A stretch of 29,696 nt of DNA, from positions 131,401-161,096 of the forward strand of contig RQSC01000958.1 of assembly GCA_013416795.1 (NCBI GenBank), written 5' to 3'. Positions 606 through 24,576 of this stretch are shown here, one piece after another (positions within the stretch are counted from its first letter, which is position 1; every line of letters starts with the position of its first letter). The position numbers and the translations under genes are program-made. The DNA comes from Prasinococcaceae sp. CCMP 1430 (lineage: Eukaryota; Plantae; Prasinodermophyta). The notes beneath the pieces are model-generated. The model was not told the origin of the DNA, did no database searches, and saw only the letters and a program-made list of their open reading frames with translations.

Positions 606-3407
606 ATGGTGCTCGGTGTGGTGAAAAAGCTGCTCACGGGGGGGGGCAAGGAGGACCCGTCCGTCTACGGTCCCACCCTCGCCCAGCGCAATGCCTTCAG
701 CGTGCCCGACGTGAAGGCGGAGGCGGAGATGAATGGTGTGGATGACCGCGACAAGGGCACGCCCGACGACTGGGTGCAGCGCCACCCAGACATGATCCGC
801 CTCACGGGGCGTCATCCCTTCAACAGCGAGCCGCCACTCACCAAGCTCTACGAGTCTGGCTTCCACACGCCCTCGCACCTGCACATCGTCCGCAACCACG
901 GTGCCGTGCCCAAGTGCGTTGCGCGCGGCGTGCGCGCGCGCGAGCACCTGCGACGCTCGCGCGCGAATGCCGCCACTCGCGCGCGCACCAGCGTGAAGAG
1001 TCTGTAGGCGTGCTGACGCCCTGGCGCCGCTGCCCGCGATCTCATCGTCCGGACCTCGCCGACGCCCGCATCCCGTTTCCGCAGACTCAGCTGGGACACC
1101 CACCGCGTCTCCGTGGGCGGCCTGGTGAGCAAGGGCCGCTCGTTCTCCATGGACGAGCTGTTCGCGGGTGGCGCGAAGCTGCCCATTTCGAGCTTCCCCG
1201 TGCTGCTGCCGTGCGCTGGCAATCGCCGCAAGGAGGAGAACATGGTGAAGCAGACCATTGGCTTCAACTGGGGCGCGGCGGCCGTGGGCGTGAGCATTTG
1301 GTCCGGCATCCACCTCTGTGACCTGCTGACGTACTGTGGCGTCAACCTCGACAAGGCCAAGTGGGTGTGCTTCGAGGGTCCCGAGGGCGAGCTTCCCGGC
1401 GGCGAGAAGGGTATCTACGGTACCTCCGTCCCCATCGACCGCTGCATGGACCGCACGCAGGACGTCCTCATCGCCTTCATGCAGAACGGCGAGAAGCTGC
1501 GCCCTGACCACGGCTATCCCGTGCGCGTCATCCTGCCCGGGCACATCGGCGGACGCACCATCAAGTGGCTGTGCAAGATCACGGTGACTGAGGAGGAGTC
1601 CGACAACTTCTATCACTACCGCGACAACCGCGTGCTGCCCAGCCACGTCGACGCCGAGCTCGCCGACAAGGAGGGCTGGTGGATGAAGCCAGAGTTCGTT
1701 ATCAACCACCTCAACATCCAGAGTGCCTCGGTGTACCCGCAGCATGGCGAGATTGCCAAGCTGCCCATCGCGAAGACCCTCAAGACGAAGAGCGGGCTGA
1801 ATGCCACTTCGCCAGTGGCTGGCGAGCCCGGTGCGACGACGTACACACTTAAGGGCTACGCCTACAGTAGCGGCCCGAAGGTGCACCGCGTGGAGATCTC
1901 CCTCGACAGCGGCAAGACGTGGATCCTCACCAAGATCACGCACCCGTGGGAGGTGATGGAGGACAAGGAGCTCTGGTCGCCGCGCTGGTCCAGCCGCTGC
2001 TGGTGCTGGTGCTTCTGGGAGCACACCATCGATCTGGGGGCGTTTGCCAACACCATCACGGCTGGCGTTGAGGGCGAGCTCTGCGTGCGCGCGTGGGACG
2101 TCACGATGAACACGCAGCCGAACGCGCTCAGCTGGAACGTGATGGGCATGCTCAACAACTGCTGGTTCCGTACCAAGGTGCACAAGACAGTCGGTGGTGG
2201 CACCGTGTCGCTCGAGTTCGAGCAGCCGACGATCGCAGGACCCAAGCAGGGCGGCTGGATGGACCGCGTGGATCCTGTCAAGGAAGCCGCGGAGAAGGCG
2301 GCCAAGGCGAAGGCGGCCGCCGAGGCCGCCAAGAAGTCCGCGAACATGCCCAAGTTTACGCGCGCCGAGGTGGCCAAGCACAACACGGAGAAGGACGTGT
2401 GGATCGTCGTCAACGAAAAGGTGTACGACTGCACGCCGTACCTGAAGGAGCACCCGGGCGGCGCCGAGTCAATCATGATCAATGCCGGTGCCGAGTCCAC
2501 CGAGGACTTCGAGGCGATTCACTCGCAGAAGGCCTGGAAAATTCTCGACAAGTACTACATCGGCGACATCGTTGGCGGCGATGAGAAGCCCGTCGTCGCG
2601 GCGCCGGTGAAGGCCGAGGGCGTTGTCCTCGACCCCACTTCGTGGGTGTCGCTGCCGCTCGTGAAGCGCACGAAGCGCAGCCACGACACCGTCGAGTTCA
2701 AGTTCCGCTTCCCGAAGGAGACGGACAAGCTCGGCCTTCCCTGCGGCCAGCACTTCCTCACGCGCATCAAGGGCCCCGACGGCAAGAACGTCATCCGGGC
2801 GTACACGCCCATCTCAAACGACAAGCAGTCGGGCTCGGTCGACCTGCTCATCAAGGTCTACTATCCCAACGACAAGTTCCCCGAGGGCGGCAAGATGTCG
2901 CAGCTCTTCGACAACCTCAAGTTGGGTGACACAGTAGAGTTCAAGGGCCCGATCGGCCACCTGGACTATCATGGCAAGAGCGACTTCACTGTGGGCGGAA
3001 AGCGCGGCACCTTCGCCAAGTGCAACTTCATCGCCGGCGGAACGGGCATCACGCCCATCTACCAGCTGCTCAAGGAGAATGCCGAGGAGAAGGACGACAA
3101 GACCAACATGGTGCTCGCCTTTGGCAACCGTACCCCCGCAGACATCCTGTGCAAAGAGGAGCTCGACTCGTTCGTCGCCACCAAGCCCAAGAACATCGAT
3201 GTGCAATACGTCGTCAGCAGCAATGGCGGCGACAAGTCATGGAAGGGTCATGTGGGTAACGTCAGCAAGGACATGTGCTTGAAGTACTTCCATCCGCCCG
3301 CCGACGACGTGCTGAACGGTCTGTGCGGGCCTCCCGGCATGGTCACTGCGCTCACCAAGGTCCTGAAGGAGCTCGGCCACAAAGAGGAGAACATTTTTGC
3401 GTTCTAA
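606..3407 (+). CDS. NIA1: Assimilatory nitrate reductase (Moco, dimerisation, cytochrome b5 and FAD/NAD(P)H domains), about 876 aa; join(606..913,1085..3407)
   Basis: Motifs: RLTGRHPFNSEP, HIVRNHGAVP, Moco cysteine in PCAGNRRKE, DHGYPVR, WNVMGMLNNCWF, heme HPGG, RAYTPIS, GGTGITP, CGPPGM. Intron 914..1084 (GTGCGT...GCAG) restores HGAVPK-LSWDTH in frame. Confidence 0.97.
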
Positions 3408-3607
3408 TTTGCGTTCTAAGTTTCGCTAGGAGTGAGTAGAATGGTGGGAGTCCAGTCGCGCCACTGTGGGGCAGGCTCCACAGACTGTGATCGTACATTT
3501 TTTAATTTAATAGCCTTGTGTAGGACACTCGGGGAGTTGTCTGCCGCGCGCTGAGCGCGCGACTCGCGTCGCGCGTGTTGGTTGGCCACGCGCGCACCAA
3601 TGCTATG

Positions 3608-3612
3608 TTACA
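3608..3612 (-). terminator. TGTAA-type poly(A) signal for the SLC37 gene
   Basis: TTACA on + about 85 nt past the stop. UGUAA is the established chlorophyte poly(A) signal. Confidence 0.45.
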
Positions 3613-3695
3613 GCCCTTTTCCAAACGCCGATCGCGCCGGCGTTTCTAGGGCAGCGCTGGTCATGACGGACGGCTGGAGAGCGGGAGCGCACGAG

Positions 3696-5392
3696 TCACA
3701 CCTCACCTGCTACTACCTTGGCCTCGGCCAGCTCGTCCTCGGCGTGCAAATCTAGCGCCGATCCCTTGGCCTTGACCCCCTTTCGTTCAGCGCGCGCGGC
3801 AGGCACAAGTGCCACCACCGAGCACAGCGCCAGCCACGCGAGCACCTTGAACAAAGCTGCCCATCCGTACGTGTGCGCGATTGATGAAGTCACGGCGCCC
3901 TGCAGCACGGAGCCCAAGGCACCAACGCCGTCCACGACGCCGACGGTGGCAGCAATGTCGCCACCATTTGCCAAGTCTCGAGGGATCAGACCGCTAAGGA
4001 AGTTGTCCGGCCCGGCGACAGCAAAGCCCGCAACAAACAGCAAGGCGACCGCACGTGCACCACTCAGAAAGCGCCCAAGCGACGCAAGAATGCCCCCGCC
4101 GCCGTCGATGCCGTCGGCTGCCTGCTCTGCCGACGCTGCCCACAGCGCCATGCCGCCCATGCTCACGGCAAATAGCAACAACATGGGCAGCAAGACGGGG
4201 TACCGCCTCCCCCCGACGAACTTGTCGACTAGGACACCGGAGAGGGCACAGCCGAGCACGGATCCCCACTCAAAAGCACTTGCGACAACGCTTGCATGGT
4301 GGTCTTCCAAGCGTACGACCTTGTGCAGGAAGAATGGCAGCCAAAAAAGGAGCACAAAACGAATGAGCTTTAGGATGAAGTACGCCAAGGCCACGCTCCG
4401 CAAGAAAGGCAGCTCCAATGTGGCGAGCATTCGGGCGAGCGCTCCTCGCCGGTCGCGCTTCATGCCGACGAGGTGCCCGACGTCCATTGCGTGAACTTCC
4501 GACTGCTGCCGGCTGCGGCCCACGACCGGTACTGCCGCCCATGCGACGGCAGAGAGAAACGTGACGAACCAGCCTGGAATGGAGAAGCACGATCGCCAGC
4601 CGTGGTGCTGGAGGTGCCCAGACAGCCCCACGTTACCAGCGGCGCCGCCGAGGTGACAACTCACGAGCCAGACCCCCATCACGGACGCCAGCACATGCTC
4701 GGGGAATGAATTGTTCAGTAGTGCCATGCATGTGGGAAATATCATGCCCTGCGTCAGACCTACGATGCCCCACAGAAGAGTGAGCGCACGCGCACCACCG
4801 CTTGATGGCACCAGCTGCGACACGAGCACGCCGAATACCCCGCTCGAGGCGCCCCCGGCGCACAGCACACCGCGTTCGCCCACGACACTGGCCAGTGGCG
4901 CCGCTGCGAAGCTTCCTATCGTGTACGCCATGAGGTACGAGGTGTCGACGACCGCGAGAGCATGCGGCCCATCGACGACCGCCTCGGCCAGCAAGCGGGC
5001 CTTGACTATGCTCACGCCCTGGCGCGTATGAAGGCGGGGAGAGCGTGGGGATGCAAACGACGACAGGAAGATACGCGTGCGCGTATGAGGCGGGCGAGCA
5101 AGTGGGTGAGCGAGCGACAGAGAAAGAGCCGCATCCACGGGAGTCAGTGCATCTGTCTCCTGCGGAGTGAGGTCCGCGAGAGCGAGCGTGCGAGCGAGTC
5201 GCAAGTGCGCGCGCACGTGTGGTGTGTGCGTGCGGTGCTCACCTTCCTCGCAGCGACGACGCAGAAGTAGAGCGCAAACGTCGCGGCGAAGACCTTCCAT
5301 CGCTCCGCTCTGGCCCCACGCGCGAGAAAGACCGAGCCAACTCTCGGTTGCGCCGAGCGCCCGCCCGGGCCCTTCTCCCTCCCGCGCCGCAT
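3696..5392 (-). CDS. SLC37/GlpT-type (OPA family) sugar-phosphate/glycerol-3-phosphate MFS transporter; complement join(3696..5018,5243..5392)
   Basis: Splicing intron 5019..5242 (GTGAGC...CAG) gives TFALYFCVVAARK-GVSIVK, the SLC37 N-terminal motif. Further motifs: FILKLIRFVLLFWLPFFL, FEWGSVLG, GPDNFLSG, GVVDGVGALGS. The start ATG at 5392 is the nearest in-frame one and is uncertain. Confidence 0.88.
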
Positions 5393-5807
5393 CGCAAGCG
5401 CGCCCCAGCCCAACCGTGCTGCGGCCGATCGCGCCGGCGGTGGGGCGCGCCTCACCCCCACGCGCGCCACCACCAGCAGCGCCCCTCACTGAGCGCCGGC
5501 CGGCCGGACAAAGGGCAAGGGAAGTGAGGGCGGGGGGGAAGCGGGCTTGCTGCTGGCTCCCCCCCAGGCGCCCCGGCGCACGCGCCTCGCGCGCGAGCTG
5601 TGCAGACTGGCCCCACCCGTGCACCGGCGCGGGCCAGCGACGCAGCGCTCCTCTCGCGCTGCCTCGACGCGAATTTTGACCTCTGCCAGGGCAAATCTGC
5701 CATGGCTGTTTGCGGTGCAGCGCGCTCGACGGTGGGCGCGGCAGAGGCGACGCTCGGCGCAGGGTGCGGGGGCCCCTCCGCCTCCGCCCCCGTCCTCACG
5801 CGTGGCC

Positions 5808-7808
5808 ATGGCGCCGCCGAGGCCAGAGCTGTCGCTGGGCTTCGAAGATGCGCTGGTGGACGCCGTGGAGGAGGCGCTCGCGGCCGGCGCGCGTGGCGGC
5901 GTGACCGCGGCCGACGTGCTTCGGCCGTACGCGCAGCGCGGCGGGGAGGCGCCCGCGGCGGCGCTCGACGGCCAGCTTATCGCGCTCGCGGCGGCCACCG
6001 GCGCCGAGCTACGAGGCGCTGGGGGCACAGGGGGTCCAGGTACGCACGCAGGCCTCGCGGCTCGAGCCTAGCCTCGCTCTGCGCGCTGCACACTGCCAGC
6101 CAGGCACTGACCTCTGCGCTGCCGTTGTCGCTGCAAAGGGCGCGTTGTGTATGGCTTCGCGCCGAGGATCCGCGCTAGGCTTGCCATGCGCGCGGGCCGC
6201 GGACGCCTGGCGGCGACGGCCGTAGCCCTCTTCTTCGCCGCGGCGCGCGTCGGGAGGCTCTTCTTCGGGGGGGCGCTCGTGGTGTCCGTCGTCATCCTCG
6301 TCCTCGCGCTCATCGCCCTTGCCATCCTCGCCGTCATGGCTGCTGCGCGTGACGGAGGTGGCCGCGGGGGTGGCCATAGGGCGCCGTCGCCTTTCGTGCC
6401 CGGCGGGCACGCGCACGGGCACGGGATCGACACCTACCACACGCACTACGTCAGGCCGATAGGGCTGGATACCGACTTCTGGTTCTGGATGTGGTATTGG
6501 GACAGGCTCGACAGGCGCGCTCAGTGGGACTGGGCGCATGGCGCGCCGCAGTATCAGTATCAGCACCAGGGTGACGCGGCGCAGGCGGCCGGGGGAAATC
6601 GCTGGGTGCCTTTCGCGCTAGGCGCCGCCGCGGCCGCGCCGGAGGAGGCAGACGGAAAACCTGGCAGAGATGGATCAGGTGGCGGTGCTGGCCCGAGCGG
6701 TGGCGGTGGCGACGGCGGCGATGGCGGTGGGGATCCGGACGACCCCTCCGCCGCGAGACGCGCTCTGCACTTGCCCGATCGAGCGCCAGCTGTTGATGAC
6801 GTCGATGCCTCTGCATCCGAACGCGCAGACAAGAAGCCCAACTTCATGCTCGACGTGTTCGCTTTCGTGTTCGGCGGGGCGGCGCACGAGTATGCGGACT
6901 ACGGCGCTGGCTCCCACGCGCTCGAGGGGCGCAGGGCGCTGGCGGTGTACGACAAAATTGCAGAATGCGGCGGAGTGGTGTGCGCCGAGCAGCTCGCGCC
7001 ATTTCTTGACGACATCTTGCTGAAGCGCTCGGCGGGCGGCAGGGGCGGCGGCACGGCAGCGGCTGCAACGGCCTTGTTTGAGCAATCAGCCAGGCGACTC
7101 CGGCGTGTGCTTCGCCTGCGGCGCACGGAGGGGTCGGGTTCGGACGATGAGCGCGCGGAGGACACGAGTGACGGCACCGGCACGCTGCAGGAGGGTTACA
7201 TGTTGCCCGTGTGTCGACGTTTCGGTGGCACTCCTGTGGCCACCGACGATGGCGTGCTCGCGTACATCTTCCCGTTGGTGGCCACAGCCTCGCGCGCCAC
7301 GGCCGGACAAGGCGCGCCTGAGCCGCCGCCGTTGCTGGAGAAGGAATGGCCACACCTCGCACCCCGGCTACACGATAGGGAGGGGCGCGTCGCGCTCGTC
7401 GCAGGACTGGGCGCGGCGAACGTAGCGCTGCTCTTTGCCTTTAGTGGCATACACGCCAGCATCACAAGTGGCAAAGGCGCGCGGGAGCTCTCGAAGCTCT
7501 TCGTCGCGAGCGTCGGAGCCGAAGGCAACCAGGAGGCGATTTCTGACTTCGAGAAGCTTCTCGTCGATTTCGTCAATTTCGTGGCGTGGATGCTGCCCGC
7601 ACTGTGGGCCTACGCGCTCAGCTTCATCGTGGTGCCCACGGCACGCTGGCTGGTCAGGGAGGTCCTAAATCGCGGGGTGAGGCACCGCAATGCACGTCGC
7701 GGGCCTGCAGCCGCCGAAGCGCTCGCGCACGCCGAAGCAGCCGAGGAGGTCAAGGGGCAAGCGCTCGCCTTCGCGACCAGAGCGCTCGCGCGTGGCAATG
7801 TCGTGTGA
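5808..7808 (+). CDS. Uncharacterised membrane protein resembling Arabidopsis At5g03900 and its cyanobacterial homologues; join(5808..6039,6139..7808)
   Basis: Blocks recognised from memory of that family: NFMLDVFAFVFG, GGVVCAEQLAPFLD, YMLPVCRRFGGTP...YIFP, ALVAGLGAANV, YALSFIVVPTARW...NRGVRHRN. Intron 6040..6138 (GTACGC...AAAG, phase 1) joins the exons in frame. Confidence 0.8.
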
Positions 7809-7878
7809 AACTGAGTAGAGTGTACACCATGGCGCGCTTCAATGTCTCGCATTGGGCGTAGGCCGAGCGACCCGAGTT

Positions 7879-9153: not shown

Positions 9154-9398
9154 CTGGGGCGGCTGGGGCCGCGCGCCTGGCGCCCCGCATGTGGCGGCAC
9201 CGGCCCCCTGCTCCGCCCCGAGCAGCGCCGACACTGGGCCCACACCCCCTTCTTCTCCCTACGGCGTGATATATATAGAATAACAAATAGTACAAACCAC
9301 GGGCGAGTTGTTTGCTCATGTGAGGCGTTTTGATGGCAAACAAGAGCAGAAGCAGTCAACATGCATGGGGGTCACGCACGTGCTTTTTGACCATCCCG

Positions 9399-12792: not shown

Positions 12793-12992
12793 TCCTGGGC
12801 GACGCGGGCGGGGCGCGCGCGCACTGTGCGTGCGCAGAGCAGAGCGCGCGTTGAGAGAACGTTCGCATGCGCGTGCGCCTTCTCGAAACGACGCAATACT
12901 TCAGTCCTGTAATAAGACGTCAAAAAGTGTTACTGTAGTCCTAATTGACGGAATTGGAATTATGGGTGGGGGCATTCAGTTCGCACGCGGGG

Positions 12993-14995: not shown

Positions 14996-15231
14996 GAGCT
15001 CGCACCGACGACGCTTTGGTGGCGCTGCGGCGCCACCCGGGCGACCTAAACAGATCCTAATTAACTTTTTAGCGAGACACCGCCGGATGCGCGCGACGAG
15101 ATGCGTACGCGCGCGACGCGAGCAGCGACACGCACAAACGCCAGCGTAGCGCTGCGGCACAGGACGGCAAAAGTGCGATGCTTGCTCATTACTGCCGGCG
15201 GCGCGCCCGCACGAGCGCCATCCCCGGGCGC

Positions 15232-17115
15232 TCACGCCAGTCCGAGGGTGTCGAGCGCCTCGAGGATCCCGGCCGCCATCGCCGCGTCGGTCACAAGCAG
15301 CCGCGGCGAGTCCTCGGCGTCGCCACGCGCGGCCGCCTCCGTCTGCGTGGCGCTGGGGTCAGCGCAGGCGCGAGCGGCCTGGCGTGCGCGCGCCAAAACA
15401 CGCGTGCGCGCAACCAGCCGCGCACGCACGACCGTACGCGCATCCACACGCATCCACGCATCCACGCGGACAGACGCGCTCGCGCGCGCGTACCTTTGCC
15501 CACTCCATGAGGGCCGGCTGCGCATTGCCCACGCACACGGCATTGTGCGCGCCCGCGAGCATATCGACGTCGTTGGCGCTGTCGCCGCACGCCACCACGC
15601 GCGCCGGATCGACGGCGAAGGCGTCGCGCACGTACTCCATCGCCGTGCGCTTGCCTGCCTCGCGCGGCAGCAGGTCGACGTACACGTACTCGCCGTCGCC
15701 GGAAGCCACCACCTTGCCCTTGCTGCCGCGCTCCTCGAGCGCTGCAAGCAGCTCCTCCGCCACCTCCGCGGCGACGTCGGCGCGCGCGAGCAGCGAGCGC
15801 TTGTACTCGCCCTGGTCGTCAGCGCCCAGCGGCCGCACCTGCGCGGTGTGTGCGTGTATGTGTGCGTGTGTGTGTGTGTGTGTCAGCGTGTCAACGCGTG
15901 CGTCTCAGTACGCGCATGTGCGCGCGCGCGTGCGCGTATGACAGTGCGTGTGCGTGCGTGCCAGCACGCACCTCGTCGGCCACGCCGCCGCGAGAGCCAC
16001 CGAGCACGGCGTCGAGGGCGTCGGCGGCGTGCGCGCCGTCCCAGCTGACGCGCAGACGCTGCGCCCAGTCCTCGTCCTCCGCGAAGCCACCCGTGAAACC
16101 GTCGGGGGCATACACGCGCGTGCCCACGCCAGTGACCAGCGCGTCGGGGGCCAACAGGGCGCCGCGCGGCAGCTCCTCGCGCAGGGCCTCGAACTGCGCC
16201 AGCGAGCGGCCGGTGGAATAGCACAGCACGCTGCCCGCTGCGGCGTGGCGGCGGCGCCAAAAGGCTGAGAACTGTGCGCGCGCGCGCGCGCAGGCGAGTG
16301 TTTGTCGATGTTTGAGTGCGTGCGCGTCAGTGCGTGCGTGTGCGCGCGCGTGTGTGCGCGCGCCACCACGGCGCGGGCGCGGGCGGCGTGCGCACGCGCA
16401 CCTCAGCGCCCGCCGCGTCGTTGCCCACCATGGTGCCGTCGAGGTCGGAGACGAGGAGGAGCGGCGCGCCCTCGTGCGCGGCGTGCACGCCGCCCTCCGC
16501 GACTGCCACGACGGCCGCGGCGCGCCCCACGCGCAGCGCGCCGCCGCCGGACGCGCCGTAGGTCTCGCGGACCGCGCCGTCCGACAGCACGAAGCGTGCC
16601 TCCTTGATGCCCTCCATGGGCATCGTCACCGCGTAGTGACCGCGGCTCGCGAGCCACCATGCCTCGGACATCGGGGTGGGCTCCACGCCGGCGATCGGCG
16701 TGCCGTCGGCGCGCGCGGGTACGATCTGCGGGGCCGGGGGCGCGAGCGTGGGTGCGGGTGCGTTAGTGAGTACGCGAACGTGTGTCCATGTGTGCGCGCG
16801 CGTGCGCGCGTGCGTGAGTGCGCAAGCGCGCGCGTGAAGACACGAGTATCGGTGCCTTGCACGGCGGCGGGTGCGCGCGTCTGGGATCGGCCCAGTGCGC
16901 GCAGCTGTCTCTCGCTCTTTCTGTCTCTCTGTCTGTCTAGGCCCATCGCGGACGCTTGCGCACACGCGCACCTGCGGAGGTGTGTCCCATCCCCTGCCAC
17001 GGAACACGATCGTCACCTCAGGCACACCTTCGCCGCCCTTGCCCTCGCCGCGTGCAGCCGCGCGCGCCACCGCCGGCCGACCGGCCAGCTGCCGAGATCG
17101 TGGGGATTCACCCAT
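15232..17115 (-). CDS. Sucrose-phosphatase-like HAD-IIB (S6PP family) protein with an N-terminal beta-rich CBM-like module, about 419 aa; complement join(15232..15378,15494..15838,15972..16271,16402..16725,16972..17115)
   Basis: HAD motifs LLVSDLDGT, YSTGRS, DLLP..AGK, VACGDSAND, VGNAQ and C-terminal AAGILEAL. Four phase-0 GT-AG introns assemble without stops. The CBM-like call for VTIVFRGRGW...WW...ARFVLSDG is an inference. Confidence 0.85.
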
Positions 17116-17636
17116 GCGTCCTCACCACGCCCGCGAGCGCGGCCGGCGCGGCCGCCGTCGCCGCCACCGGCGCCAGCAGGCCGACGAGCGCCACGTCAAG
17201 CGCCAGGCCGACCAGCAGGTCCGAGACGAAGAGGTCGAACTCCTTCCAGAATTCCTCGCCGCGCTTCTGCACCTCCGCGATGGTCGCGCACCCCGAGTCG
17301 ATGGCGACCTCGCAGACGACCTTGAACACGAAGCGCGTGTCCGCGATGAGCCTGTCGCGCAGCGGGGCCCAGCCCGCTGCCCATCGCCCGAAGGCGCCGC
17401 TGTCCCACAGCGCGATGTATCGCCGCACCATGCCCTCTCGCAGCTGGCCGCTCTGCGCGTACTCGGCCATGTCAGCGGGCAGCGCCACGTCCTTGCGCTT
17501 GCACAGCGCCTGGACGTCCTCCCAGGCCATCGGCTCGCCCTCCCAGCCCTCCTCGTCGTCGCCGTCCCCGCCCCCGCCGCCGCCCCCTCCGGTGCCCTTC
17601 AGGCCGCCGTCGCTACCGCCCGCGCCGCCATCGCCG
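17108..17636 (-). CDS. N-terminal half (about 175 aa) of a RETICULATA/RER (DUF3411) plastid envelope protein; C-terminal half absent, start unresolved
   Basis: A Gly-rich linker is followed by LRDRLIADTRFVFKVVCEVAIDSGCATIAEVQKRGEEFWKEFDLFVSDLLVGLALDVALVGLLAP, the diagnostic RE/RER1 block. TGA at 17110-17108. No LPSSVFE or SSNARYQ-type C-terminal block appears in any window ORF. Confidence 0.8.
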
Positions 17637-18083
17637 CTGCACGCACGCACGCACGCACGCACGCGCAAGCACGCACGCACGCACGCACAGACAGACACAC
17701 ACGCACGCGCTCGCGGTGTGGCGGGGGCTGCTGCGCCGCGCAGCGCGCCGCGCCGCCGCCCACAGCCCTCCCCTTGATCACCGGGGTTCAGGTTACTTTT
17801 AAGGGTTAAACAATTAGGGTTCATTCACTTGCGCACCCTAGTACCCTGCCAATCGCGTACCCAGCACAACACCCGGGCGGACCCGCACCCCCGGTCTACC
17901 ACCTGACTACCCCGAGTACCGGTACCGGTCCAACCCCCGTGTCGCGCGTGTCACCCCTGGTCTTCACTCAGGGACTCGACTTGCCTTGCTCATCGGGACC
18001 TGGTTTGATCCGTGGTCAGACGTATCAGAGCGGGCGCGGGCGCGTGAACAGCCCGAGCGCCCAGCACATTGCACGCCCATCCC

Positions 18084-18117
18084 GCGGCGGCGGCGGGGGC
18101 GGCGGGGGCGGCGGGGG

Positions 18118-18149
<32 letters not shown>
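18084..18149. repeat. G-rich tandem repeat (GCGGCGGGG x3) immediately followed by poly-C(31)
   Basis: Seen directly, upstream of the SEC11 ATG. Confidence 0.85.
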
Positions 18150-18270: not shown

Positions 18271-19252
18271 ATGGTGCTCGCGTCCGCGTGGAATGCGTTG
18301 CCCGACCTGGGCATCGCCGCGGGGTGTGCCGACACGGTCAAGACACTGCGGGAGATGAACAAGCGGCAGATGCTCAGCCAGGTCTGACGCGCGGCGAGGG
18401 CGGGCGCACTCACGCGCGCTCTTGGGGGCGCGTGCGCCGCGCGATGGCACGCGCTGAGCCGTGCGCCAGCGCGTGTCTGCGCAACACCGCGCTGACGCCT
18501 ACGCGCACCCGCCTCTGCGCGCTCCTGCAACAATACTCTCCCTGGCAGGCGCTCGCGCTTGGCCTGATTTGCTCGAGTGCACTGATGATCTGGAAGGTGC
18601 TCATGCTCTGGACGGGGTCGGAGTCTCCGGTCGTCGTTGTGCTCAGCGGGAGCATGGAGCCCGGCTTCCAGCGCGGCGACATCCTCTTCTTGCGCTTGGA
18701 CGAGGAACCCTTTCACACGGGCGAGGTCGTAGGTATGTCCTCCAAGCGGGGCAGTGGACAAGCCAAGGCGCACGCACACGAACGCGAACGTGTGTGTGTG
18801 CAAGCCGTGACCGCTGATCTATGCAGTGGACACCGGCGTGTTCAAGTCATCGCTGACCCTTGCGCGTGCGCGCTCGCTCGCTCGCGCGCGCTCGCACGCT
18901 CGCGCGCACACTCGTGTGCATGCTCGCCGTGTCCTCTCTGGCGCTTCCGCGCCATGCAGTGTTCAACATCCACGGTCGCGACATCCCCATCGTGCACCGC
19001 GTAGTGCGCGTGCACGAGGACGAGGGCACGGGCACAGAGCGCATCCTCACCAAGGGCGACAACAACTATGGCGACGACCGCGTGCTCTACGCGCACGGCC
19101 AGGAGTGGCTCGGGCGCGAGCACATTATGGGGCGATCCACGGGCTACCTGCCGCACGTGGGCATGGTCACCATCATCATGAACGACTACCCGCTCGTCAA
19201 GTTCCTGCTCATAGGCGTGCTCGGGCTGCTCGTCGTCACGGGGAAGGAATGA
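18271..19252 (+). CDS. SEC11: Signal peptidase complex catalytic subunit SEC11 (S26B), about 195 aa; join(18271..18381,18549..18732,18960..19252)
   Basis: [63 protein letters not shown]. Two introns restore the frame. Confidence 0.95.
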
Positions 19253-19418
19253 GCGCGCGCGCGCGCGCGCTCGTGTGGATGCGGAGGAGTAATAAGCGGG
19301 ACCTGGCGATTTTGACGCCGTTGGCGCGGGGGTCGGCGCGGGCGCGCACGCGGGCAGACGCGCGTGTGTGCGCGTGCACGTCCCGCACATGTGCTGAGAG
19401 CCAGCAGGTGGCAGTGTG

Positions 19419-19449: not shown

Positions 19450-20605
19450 TCACGGCCGCACCTGGATGTACACTGCGCGCGCGAGCGTACGGGGAGGACA
19501 GCAGAAAGCCGCACGCGCGCGCGCGCACGCGCGCACAAACGTATGAGCACACACACACACGCGCGCGCGCACGCATCGGTCAGATGAAGCACAGCCCGCC
19601 GTATCTTGCCGCGGGCCACGCGCCTGCGCGATGCACACGCGCGCGGGCACGTGCGCGCGCACGCGCGCGGGCGCATGCGTCACACTCCGCGGCGTGCGCG
19701 AGCCCCTCACCTGCCTCGCTGACCACCGGGATGTCCGCGTACGTCCCCACGAGCGTATGGTACGCGCAGTACGCCACAGCGCCGATGGACGTGACGAAGG
19801 TCATCGTGCACATGAAGCCGCCCACCATGCTCACCTGCAGCTCCATGGGCAGGTAGGAGATCACCTAGAGGAGGGCACGGGCGAGCGTCAGAAGGCAAGC
19901 TCACTCACACGTGTGTGCACGCGCGCGCTCACGCGCTCACGCGCTCACACACAGTCGCACAGTCGCACGGGCACGCGCAGGTGCAGGCGCAGGTGCAGGC
20001 GTACGCGCGCGCACGTTTGAACGCGCGCACACGCGCGACCACACACAGACGCGATTGCATCAGTGCGCACGTGCGGCCTTTTGCAGCCCGCTCACCCACA
20101 CTCCCCTCTTCTTCCCGCGCACGCGCGCCCCTTACCAGCCCGGCGAGCATGAGGCAGATATCGAGCAGGATGGACTGCATGGCGTTGAAGCGCACGAAGT
20201 GCGGCAGCTTGTTGTTGCGCACGACCACCAGGAAGAGCGCGAAGAAGACCAGGAAGGGGATCACGCTGTTGGCGTGGTACGCGTTGAGCACGGGTCCGAA
20301 CACCGTCAGCAGGAGGTTGCTCACCTCGTACTGGTCGTAGATCTCGCGACCGAAGACCAGGCCCTCGATGAGCGGCAGCACGTAGGGCAGGATGGCCGCA
20401 CAGCGCCACGCGGCGTTGGGCGGGCCGTCTGCGGGCACGTAGTCGGGGCTCACCTCGGCGGCGCGCGCGGCCACGCGGCGCGCACGCGACCGCACGCCGC
20501 GCCGCGCCGCGCCGCGCCGAGCGCCCTGTGGCGCAACGCTCGCCCCTACCCCCACCCCACCAACTCACCCACACACTCACGCACGAGCTCGCGCGCGCGC
20601 ACACG

Positions 20606-20685: not shown

Positions 20686-20830
20686 CAGAGGCCTGCGCAC
20701 AGCGCAGGGCAGCCGCCGGCGGGGCTTTGGGCGCGCGCGGGCACCGCGCGGCGAAATCCCCTTCCGTAAAATGTCCGAACGGCTCTCCTGAAGCTCTTTT
20801 GCACCCCGATTGCCGGCCGAACCGCGGCAT
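19450..20830 (-). CDS. TIC20: Tic20/Ycf60-family plastid inner-envelope import protein, about 236 aa; complement join(19450..19472,19711..19864,20136..20525,20687..20830)
   Basis: [60 protein letters not shown], and an Arg/Ala-rich transit peptide-like N-terminus. The first exon and ATG are less certain. Confidence 0.88.
20600..20687. repeat. (CA)n microsatellite forming most of Tic20 intron 1
   Basis: Seen directly. Confidence 0.85.
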
Positions 20831-21353
20831 TCCGCGCCACGAAATGTTAAAAATGAGAAAAAAATCCGCGCCCGAGCGAGGATAAGAAGGCAGCAGCAGG
20901 GGATCCAAACGAGCGGACGCAAACCCTCAATGGGTAAGAACCTAAATATGCAATTTGTGCTGTGAGTTTCACACCAAACCTAAACCCGGACCCACTCCAA
21001 CCCCGCGCGTATGCTCCACGGCGGCGAGCAACGTCGGGGCGCGCGGGTGCGCGAGCACACACGTGTGCGCGTGCACGCGCGCGTGTGTGCACACGGATAG
21101 CCGAATAGTTAACAGTACATGTACAACTGCCGTACGAACATTGGAAAAGAAGTGCGGAGGGACGAGCGTATGTGCGCGCGGGCGTGTGCTTTCGAGCTCG
21201 TGCACGAGCACGAGCACGAGTGCGAGCAAGACAGTGTGTGTGTGTGCGTTTGTGTGCGCGCGCGCGGGCGTTCGTGTGCGCGTGCGGCGTGCGCTCGCGT
21301 GCACGTGCGCGTGCGAAAAGTGCCAGGGCTCCAAATGCGCACGCACGCGCGCA

Positions 21354-24302: not shown

Positions 24303-24576
24303 GCGTGGCGAGCGAGCTCTCCCACTAATATACTTTTTTCGACAACGAGTCGGCGTTGACGCGCATGCGGCGCGCGCGACAAGTCTCGCACCGCGGCGCA
24401 TGAGCACACTCGGTGCTAAAGTGCGTCCTGTGGGCGTGGCCTCAGTGGGAAAAACTTTTTCTGTTGGTACACTAATTAGTCATCATCCGGCTGCATCTCC
24501 GTGCCTTTGTGTGTGTGTGTCTTTGTGTGTTTGTGTGTGGCGAGCGTCCACATCTGGCCGGGCCACATCAAGAAGC

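Follow-up and report, generated by a model that had tools for sequence, protein, structure and literature searches.

A truncated RETICULATA-type gene abuts an intact CBM25-like/HAD phosphatase gene at a polymorphic junction in Prasinococcaceae sp. CCMP 1430

We analyzed a 29,696-nucleotide stretch of contig RQSC01000958.1 (positions 131,401 to 161,096 of the forward strand, assembly GCA_013416795.1) from Prasinococcaceae sp. CCMP 1430, referred to here as the window. In it the 5' part of a gene of the RETICULATA-related family (RER; DUF3411, PF11891) lies directly upstream of a phosphatase gene whose product combines a domain resembling carbohydrate-binding module family 25 (CBM25) with a sucrose-phosphatase-like (S6PP) catalytic domain of the HAD type. 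The RER gene is truncated relative to that of a sister species, the phosphatase gene is intact, the juxtaposition of the two is lineage-specific, and the junction is polymorphic; the case for an intron or a bicistronic message at the junction is weak. We tentatively favor, with a probability of roughly 45%, a reading in which a truncated RER remnant stands beside an intact phosphatase that is made as a separate protein.

The two genes are arranged head to tail on the minus strand. The RER frame occupies 17636..17126 and continues to a TGA at 17110-17108. An earlier reading made from the sequence only had given this stop and the phosphatase ATG at 17115-17113, which overlaps it within ATGGGTGA; both placements are correct. 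The RER and phosphatase frames of the window haplotype are separate, with a one-base offset, and the phosphatase frame is shut three codons 5' of its ATG by a TGA at 17124-17122. As can be read directly from the bases, one base less in the GGG at 17113-17111 would give a single continuous open reading frame (ORF) across both genes. The GC content of the window is ∼69-70%, in agreement with the 69.8% reported for Prasinoderma coloniale (PMC7455551), and the window may belong to that species or a near relative. The GC content of the junction zone (∼17160-17060) is ∼90%. The coordinates of the features are collected in Table 1.

The RER frame was confirmed to contain a Gly-rich linker, the first conserved block, and one hydrophobic helix, and then to stop. 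Its Pfam match to PF11891 covers positions 1-71 of 177 only (E 4.6e-22); positions 72-177 of the profile are not present, and the DUF3411 domain is thus incomplete. A tblastn search of the window with full-length RER proteins gave no further match, in agreement with the earlier statement that the C-terminal half is missing from it. RE1 and RER1 are basic amino acid transporters of the plastid inner envelope with four to six helices and a C-terminal GxQ motif that is reported to be essential (PMC12449267). The fragment has a single hydrophobic segment against the four to six helices of full RER transporters, and it stops before the GVQ end of its relatives, without the GxQ motif. Without its C-terminal half and this motif, the fragment therefore cannot be a transporter. 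The part that is present has a poly-Gly stretch and an IDSGCAT..AEVQKRG..FW.EF block that can be aligned to 11 RERs from outgroups, an identity of 47-50% to plant RE/RER1 over ∼75% of the exon (likewise to a Gonium protein), and a net positive flank after the helix, as in the native RER loop. At the 5' end, the ATG at 17824 precedes the Arg-rich leader by the same distance as the Met of the sister protein, and the segment that it opens has a GC content at third codon positions (GC3) of only 0.60. A (GCAC)n array was located by Tandem Repeats Finder at 17639-17708.

The sister species is represented here by Prasinoderma singulare-like marine metagenome contigs, in which each of the two genes is complete and has a locus of its own. 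The sister RER gene adjoins a PNP_UDP_1 gene and has its own Met, an Arg/Ala-rich leader, poly-Gly, and one intron followed by a single exon to the GVQ end. The sister phosphatase gene lies downstream of a kinesin gene and has its own Met and a ∼59-residue leader before the first strand. The N-terminal RER exon of the window (RER-N) is 66-85% identical to the intact sister RER and collinear with it to 'LAPVAA' (∼17160), beyond which the two diverge. This comparison bears out one part of an earlier suggestion, namely that the RER gene was truncated by a deletion or rearrangement. Apart from the two genes themselves, nothing in the window is syntenic with the sister contigs, and the homology of the window to the sister phosphatase leader is not significant against shuffled sequences.

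A fusion of DUF3411 with S6PP, for which a search among relatives had been proposed, was not encountered in the family. The RER profile matched none of the 150 closest phosphatase representatives, none of 120 Pfam-annotated family members has an RER domain, and 38 RER relatives carry PF11891 alone. The separate sister loci and the lack of an RER domain in these ∼250 relatives show the juxtaposition to be lineage-specific and not a conserved architecture.

The phosphatase gene comprises five exons (17115/17088-16972, 16725-16402, 16271-15972, 15838-15494, and 15342-15235) with GT..CAG borders throughout. The four introns (246, 130, 133, and 151 nt) were verified by homology, and each contains a CTGAC or CTAAC motif. 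The exon borders are consistent with contiguous coding sequence in the sister, as are the flanks of intron 1, and exon A is homologous to the first sister exon from 'GEVTICFRGRGF' onward. The sister's exon junction is also seen in the protein P0189 (UniRef name Prasinoderma singulare), which begins inside the N-terminal domain. GC3 is 0.89-0.94 in exons B-E. The intron positions themselves differ wholly between the two species, with four introns in the window (15232-17115) and two, placed elsewhere, in the sister (contig L006, 9027-10801), which suggests a rapid turnover of introns in this lineage.

Exons were searched individually. PF05116 (S6PP) matched exon C with 38.4 bits and exon D with 84.2 bits (Pfam cut-off 20.3). 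The best NCBIfam match was TIGR01485, the plant/cyanobacterial sucrose-phosphatase (SPP) model, to which single exons scored 35.2 and 70.9 bits, to be read against a cut-off of 183.65 that applies to the whole protein. Exon D was aligned to residues 111-213 of Synechocystis SPP (PDB 1S2O), and HAD motifs I-IV (DxDxT, S/T, K, and GDxxND) were all found in exons B-D by alignment to this structure. Exon B gave no match when searched against proteins of 144-458 residues.

Searches with exon D and with the protein of a relative identified a family of 400-440-residue proteins in Chlamydomonas, Volvox, Gonium, Dunaliella, Haematococcus, Bryopsis, and Mesostigma, named in the source only as 'sucrose phosphatase-like domain-containing.' The closest cluster (68% identity) includes UniRef A0A7S3BMZ5 from Prasinoderma singulare. 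The window and sister proteins are ∼68% identical, and the sister protein is 35-42% identical to those of chlorophytes. The family (P0207, P0048, P0044, P0232, and others) is conserved across chlorophytes and Mesostigma, with a CBM48 added in some members. A literature search for an algal enzyme combining a CBM with an S6PP-like domain found no characterized member.

The description of the N-terminal domain as CBM-like holds at the level of the family. The N-terminal domain of the chlorophyte homologue P0207 (residues 38-140), modeled alone with a predicted local distance difference test score (pLDDT) of 90.9, was closest in fold to the CBM25 modules 2C3W and 2LAB, with template modeling (TM) scores of 0.75-0.81 and E values of 2e-5 to 1e-4, that of 2C3W being 3e-5. 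One family member was modeled (pLDDT 91) as an N-terminal β-sandwich and a HAD core closest to 1S2O (TM 0.83). The corresponding domain of the window protein aligns to the family but is divergent. The Prasinoderma sequences match three nearly invariant tryptophans of the family (W14, W28, and W43) only in part, in an alignment that is weak here. One or two of them seem to be lost from the Prasinoderma copies, and starch binding may consequently be weakened or lost.

The species of the window is common in the Tara metagenomes, with exact protein matches in 32 index blocks, and its wild contigs, 98-99% identical, differ by many microsatellite indels in introns and intergenic stretches. The exact product of the exon C ORF is found in at least 24 Tara contigs. 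The six best wild contigs were aligned and are 98-99% identical to the window and syntenic with it up to 11 kb downstream; four further contigs have the same gene order. Nine of the 10 begin within ∼55 nt of each other at the junction (equivalent to window 17060-17114), and the tenth begins further downstream, inside exon B.

The exact junction sequence of the window is present in none of the seven wild contigs that are informative there. Six of these (L017, L018, L020, L021, L023, and L024) carry CGGCGCGGCC, with one base changed within it in L021 and L023, where the window has CGGCAGCTGGCC, and an AG proposed as a splice acceptor (below) is therefore absent from six of the seven. In this common type the phosphatase frame is open to the contig ends as an Arg/Ala-rich, GC3-rich leader. 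The two longest of the six are entirely unlike the window further upstream. Short-read assemblies are at their least reliable where contigs end; the common junction type nonetheless recurs in six samples.

The seventh contig, L026, has 27 nt fewer than the window between the ATG and the leader, a difference that preserves the frame. The ATGGG is retained, with GCC ATG G as its context; the TGA, the GTGAGG that had been proposed as a splice donor, and most of the 37-nt segment that follows from that proposal are absent. One base 5' of the CATGGG of L026 stands GCGCTCGCGG, and the composite motif formed by the two is found at a single place in the window, 17140-17111; chance would give 0.02 occurrences. 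L026 ties exon A to the upstream sequence of the window for ∼26 nt in an independent assembly, and because the motif is rare a plain mis-join, the other half of the earlier suggestion of a deletion or misassembly, becomes less likely. The linkage stops short of the part that is demonstrably derived from RER. A match of the 5' end of L026 to the RER helix region ranked ∼13th of 1974 windows and was set aside as only suggestive, the composite motif being the stronger link. An origin of the exon A leader as an 88-nt tandem copy of the RER post-helix segment was also rejected, its score of 11.5 being exceeded at many other places.

Further searches for sequence spanning the junction gave no hits within their scope. 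No protein of 131-416 residues nearly identical to RER-N was found in the searched collection. This fits a ∼530-nt island between two assembly-breaking stretches, by an argument from absence. Exact look-ups of five window ORFs that span the junction found none on record, cluster look-ups for longer N-terminal versions of the wild ORF returned only members of 102-116 residues, and neither a scan of the JGI metagenomes with the RER-N protein nor a scan for the junction DNA pattern gave a match. Two tracts of the locus, intron 1 (16726-16971) and the (GCAC)n stretch (17637-17702), are multiples of three and stop-free; a simple ORF caller therefore does not halt at them and reports chimeric 'proteins,' as happened with the Tara contigs.

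The sequence-only reading had joined the two genes by removing a 37-nt intron, 17125..17089 (GTGAGG..GGCAG), to connect ...ALAGV with LAGRPAV... in phase 0. The arithmetic is right and the borders are GT..AG, but the proposed intron is not supported. There are 21 GT..AG pairs around the junction that restore the frame, and the existence of such a pair therefore carries no weight. At 37 nt the segment falls well short of the 130-246 nt of the verified local introns (66-70 nt for a putative one), and it is devoid of the CTGAC/CTAAC branch motif that all four verified introns possess. Its splice sites are not conserved within the species, the acceptor being gone in six of seven wild contigs and the donor in L026. 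The composition of the segment is non-coding-like, with 62% GC and a GC3 in the phosphatase frame of 0.45 as compared with 0.92 for the exons (P=8.5e-5). Low GC3 at the start codon was considered as a general mark of 5' coding ends and rejected, as the other genes of the window do not have it.

A true fusion nevertheless deserves weight as the first of three options raised earlier, a chimeric enzyme. Under the RER promoter, the RER transit peptide, poly-Gly stretch, N-domain, and first helix would be translated in frame with the CBM25-like and HAD phosphatase domains, either through splicing of 17125..17089 or through an open frame already present in natural haplotypes or in the true sequence. 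The enzyme would then be tethered to the inner envelope with its catalytic part in the stroma. The genes share one orientation and leave neither a boundary island nor space for a promoter between them, RER-N is still well conserved, and the GTGAGG donor and GGCAG acceptor are the best-looking of the candidate pairs. In L026 the GCG CTC GCG codon phase, corresponding to the RER frame of the window, runs into the phosphatase frame without meeting a stop. The positive flank after the helix would, by the positive-inside rule, suit such an arrangement, and a transcript started at the RER promoter, having six AUGs before the phosphatase frame, could give that enzyme only as a fusion. Against this stand the stop and frame offset in the window as given, the length of the intron and its missing branch motif, the chance supply of frame-restoring pairs, the loss of the acceptor in most conspecific contigs, and an architecture that none of the ∼250 relatives shares. 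L026 itself covers only 26 nt 5' of the ATG, and an open frame that short means little at ∼90% GC. With its splicing basis so weakened, we regard a fusion as rather doubtful. A particular form of it, in which natural populations carry the RER N-module in frame with the phosphatase through a hypervariable linker and the window has either a mini-intron of 37-40 nt and recent origin or an indel that breaks the frame, we consider unlikely.

The second option, a bicistronic mRNA, would have the truncated RER and the phosphatase translated from one transcript by leaky scanning or by termination and reinitiation at ATGGGTGA, where stop and start overlap. The upstream ORF that starts in RER spans 714 nt. 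Six AUGs occur from 17824 to 17116, and four of these have G at both -3 and +4; leaky scanning is therefore disfavored. Eukaryotic reinitiation is inefficient after a long upstream ORF, and the overlap is not kept in the wild haplotypes. Exclusively polycistronic loci have been described in green algae, some with overlapping stop and start codons (PMC7896298; PMC11291117), and the window resembles them in having two same-strand ORFs that overlap in this way. The demonstrated algal mechanism is leaky scanning past upstream ORFs that are short (median 291-357 nt) and contain few AUGs (PMC11291117), whereas the upstream ORF of the window is long, AUG-rich, and unfit for it. We therefore judge a bicistronic message highly improbable.

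An assembly artifact was also weighed, in which a mis-join or collapse at the GC-rich stretch, or indel errors, would conceal RER and phosphatase genes that are really intact or cleanly fused. The junction zone is one where all 10 independent short-read contigs break, its exact sequence recurs in none of the seven informative ones, and a single base fewer in the GGG would open the frame. If the window comes from the published P. coloniale assembly, it was made from PacBio reads and polished with Illumina data (PMC7455551). The rare composite motif beside exon A in L026 argues against an artifact, consensus errors do not make ∼30 nt of unique, AT-richer sequence, and the phosphatase side is found in at least 24 contigs as against no near-identical RER-N protein of 131-416 residues in the searched collection, as expected of an RER-N island of too little length for assembly and not of an intact gene, the last again an argument from absence. 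On balance an artifact appears improbable. The window could alternatively represent a null allele, in which the rearrangement or later indels inactivated both genes too recently for decay to show, with the common wild haplotype being the working one. Its junction is indeed unlike that of all seven wild contigs, and it is non-coding in composition where the common type has an in-frame Arg/Ala-rich, GC3-rich leader. The phosphatase exons are without defect, however, and in the 11 kb downstream the window looks like any other genome of the population, with 98-99% identity. A null allele is thus quite improbable.

On the reading that we favor, with separate proteins, a rearrangement would have placed the 5' part of an RE/RER1-type gene (leader, poly-Gly, N-domain, and first helix) upstream of the phosphatase gene and replaced the ancestral 5' end of the latter, its own Met and ∼59-residue leader as still present in the sister. 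Indels at the GC-rich junction set the window apart from wild conspecific genomes. The phosphatase mRNA would start inside or just after the RER fragment, the phosphatase would be translated alone from the ATG at 17115 with a short Arg/Ala-rich leader, and the RER fragment would be a recent or weakly constrained remnant. Two observations count in favor of this start: the 268 nt 5' of the ATG contain no AUG, and L026 keeps the ATG in frame across its 27-nt indel, in a stronger context.

Several points weigh on the other side. We infer both the transcription start site and the use of the ATG from sequence. The first 11 codons around the ATG have a GC3 of 0.45, unlike the coding sequence of this genome, and the leader from the ATG, with 33 residues (24 in L026), is short for a plastid transit peptide. 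Six of the seven wild contigs differ just 5' of 17087, and as their frame is open to the contig ends, the common haplotype may have its start at a more 5' position. The RER and phosphatase ORFs are not separated by an AT-rich boundary island. Finally, RER-N is without clear decay. It has a GC3 of 0.94. Across sites conserved in 11 outgroups, the window shows 9 lineage-specific changes and the sister 5, a difference that is not significant, and the pairwise ratios of non-synonymous to synonymous substitution (dN/dS) are 0.49 and 0.20 for its two parts as compared with 0.16-0.22 for the phosphatase. At most these values indicate a mild relaxation of RER-N. A dead remnant would have to be young; either the truncation is young, or the RER fragment is still in use.

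Table 1. Features of the RER/phosphatase locus in window coordinates
Feature	Coordinates	Strand	Remarks
AT-rich island 5' of RER frame	17783..17836	.	30-nt windows with GC <= 0.43
Possible first RER coding segment	17703..17824	-	ATG 17824, Arg/Ala-rich leader; uncertain
(GCAC)n low-complexity stretch	17637..17702	-	Putative in-frame intron of 66-70 nt; ends GTGCAG
RER-N exon	17126..17636	-	Poly-Gly, conserved N-domain, first DUF3411 block with one hydrophobic helix
Candidate mini-intron	17089..17125	-	GTGAGG..GGCAG; unsupported as intron
ATG of phosphatase frame	17113..17115	-	Context ACGC ATG G
TGA closing RER frame	17108..17110	-	
Exon A	16972..17088	-	Arg/Ala-rich leader and first CBM25-like strand (VTIVFRGRGW); GC3 0.74
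Intron 1	16726..16971	-	246 nt, in frame, stop-free; CTAAC branch motif
Exon B	16402..16725	-	Remainder of CBM25-like domain and HAD motif I (DLDGT)
Intron 2	16272..16401	-	130 nt; CTGAC
Exon C	15972..16271	-	S6PP domain, motif II (YSTGRS); PF05116 positions 38-104
Intron 3	15839..15971	-	133 nt; CTGAC
Exon D	15494..15838	-	S6PP motifs III-IV (AGK, GDSAND); PF05116 E 1.4e-23
Intron 4	15343..15493	-	151 nt; CTGAC 19 nt from 3' site
Exon E and stop	15232..15342	-	TGA 15234-15232
AT-rich island between convergent 3' ends of phosphatase and MFS genes	15039..15083	.	

Short AT-rich islands stand out from the ∼70% GC background of the window at 3377-3532, 7797-7826, 9250-9309, 12885-12968, 15039-15083, 17783-17836, 20829-20984, and 24310-24536. 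They match many, though not all, gene boundaries and could be promoter or polyadenylation zones. The island 5' of the RER frame is likely a 5' gene boundary or a promoter zone shared with a divergent SEC11-like gene. This gene, a SEC11-type signal peptidase with at least one intron (18400-19300, plus strand), and a TIC20-like gene (19929-20555, minus strand) flank the RER fragment. In the intergenic region between the divergent RER and SEC11-like genes, a 31-base homopolymer (C on the plus strand) lies beside a (GCGGGGGCG)n array at 18084-18149; it may be real or an artifact of assembly or polishing. Elsewhere in the window a nitrate reductase with all five domains within one 764-residue ORF (1113-5624) adjoins a convergent MFS transporter gene, and the two are probably part of a nitrate-assimilation cluster.

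The family of CBM25-like plus SPP-like HAD proteins is widespread in green algae, and a starch-binding HAD phosphatase, if that is what it proves to be, would bring a new type of enzyme into the picture of algal starch or sugar-phosphate metabolism. Were the fusion true, a phosphatase gene in the earliest-branching green lineage would have acquired the part of a transporter gene that provides targeting and membrane anchorage, giving a membrane-anchored enzyme of recent origin, a sugar- or glucan-phosphate phosphatase tethered to the inner envelope. Were it false, a working form of an RE/RER1-type basic amino acid transporter would have been lost at this site, and the locus would illustrate the errors that a GC-rich junction can bring into gene prediction and short-read assembly alike.

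The RER fragment shares with Arabidopsis RETICULATA1/RER1 the poly-Gly stretch, the N-domain, and the first DUF3411 block with the first helix, and differs in having neither the remaining helices nor the C-terminal GxQ. The phosphatase has the same build as the P. singulare protein (UniRef A0A7S3BMZ5, which is P0189) and the chlorophyte homologues, an N-terminal β-sandwich followed by an S6PP/Hydrolase_3 domain, but in these relatives the protein begins with a Met and leader of its own and contains no RER sequence. The HAD-IIB core and cap fold is shared with Synechocystis sucrose-phosphatase (1S2O) and the plant and cyanobacterial SPPs (TIGR01485). Unlike plant SPP, the family of the window protein has the additional CBM25-like module and is without the plant S6PP C-terminal domain, and its sugar-phosphate substrate is putative. 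The predicted fold of the family N-terminal domain is that of the CBM25 modules of the Bacillus halodurans amylase (2C3W) and the Paenibacillus β/α-amylase (2LAB), at only 20-22% identity and with no Pfam CBM match, the model being that of a chlorophyte member and not of the window protein. The glucan phosphatases SEX4 and LSF combine a dual-specificity phosphatase with a CBM48. The window enzyme resembles them in that a phosphatase is joined to a module of the starch-binding type in a plastid-bearing organism, but its catalytic fold is that of the HAD enzymes and not of the dual-specificity phosphatases, and a glucan substrate would be hypothetical.

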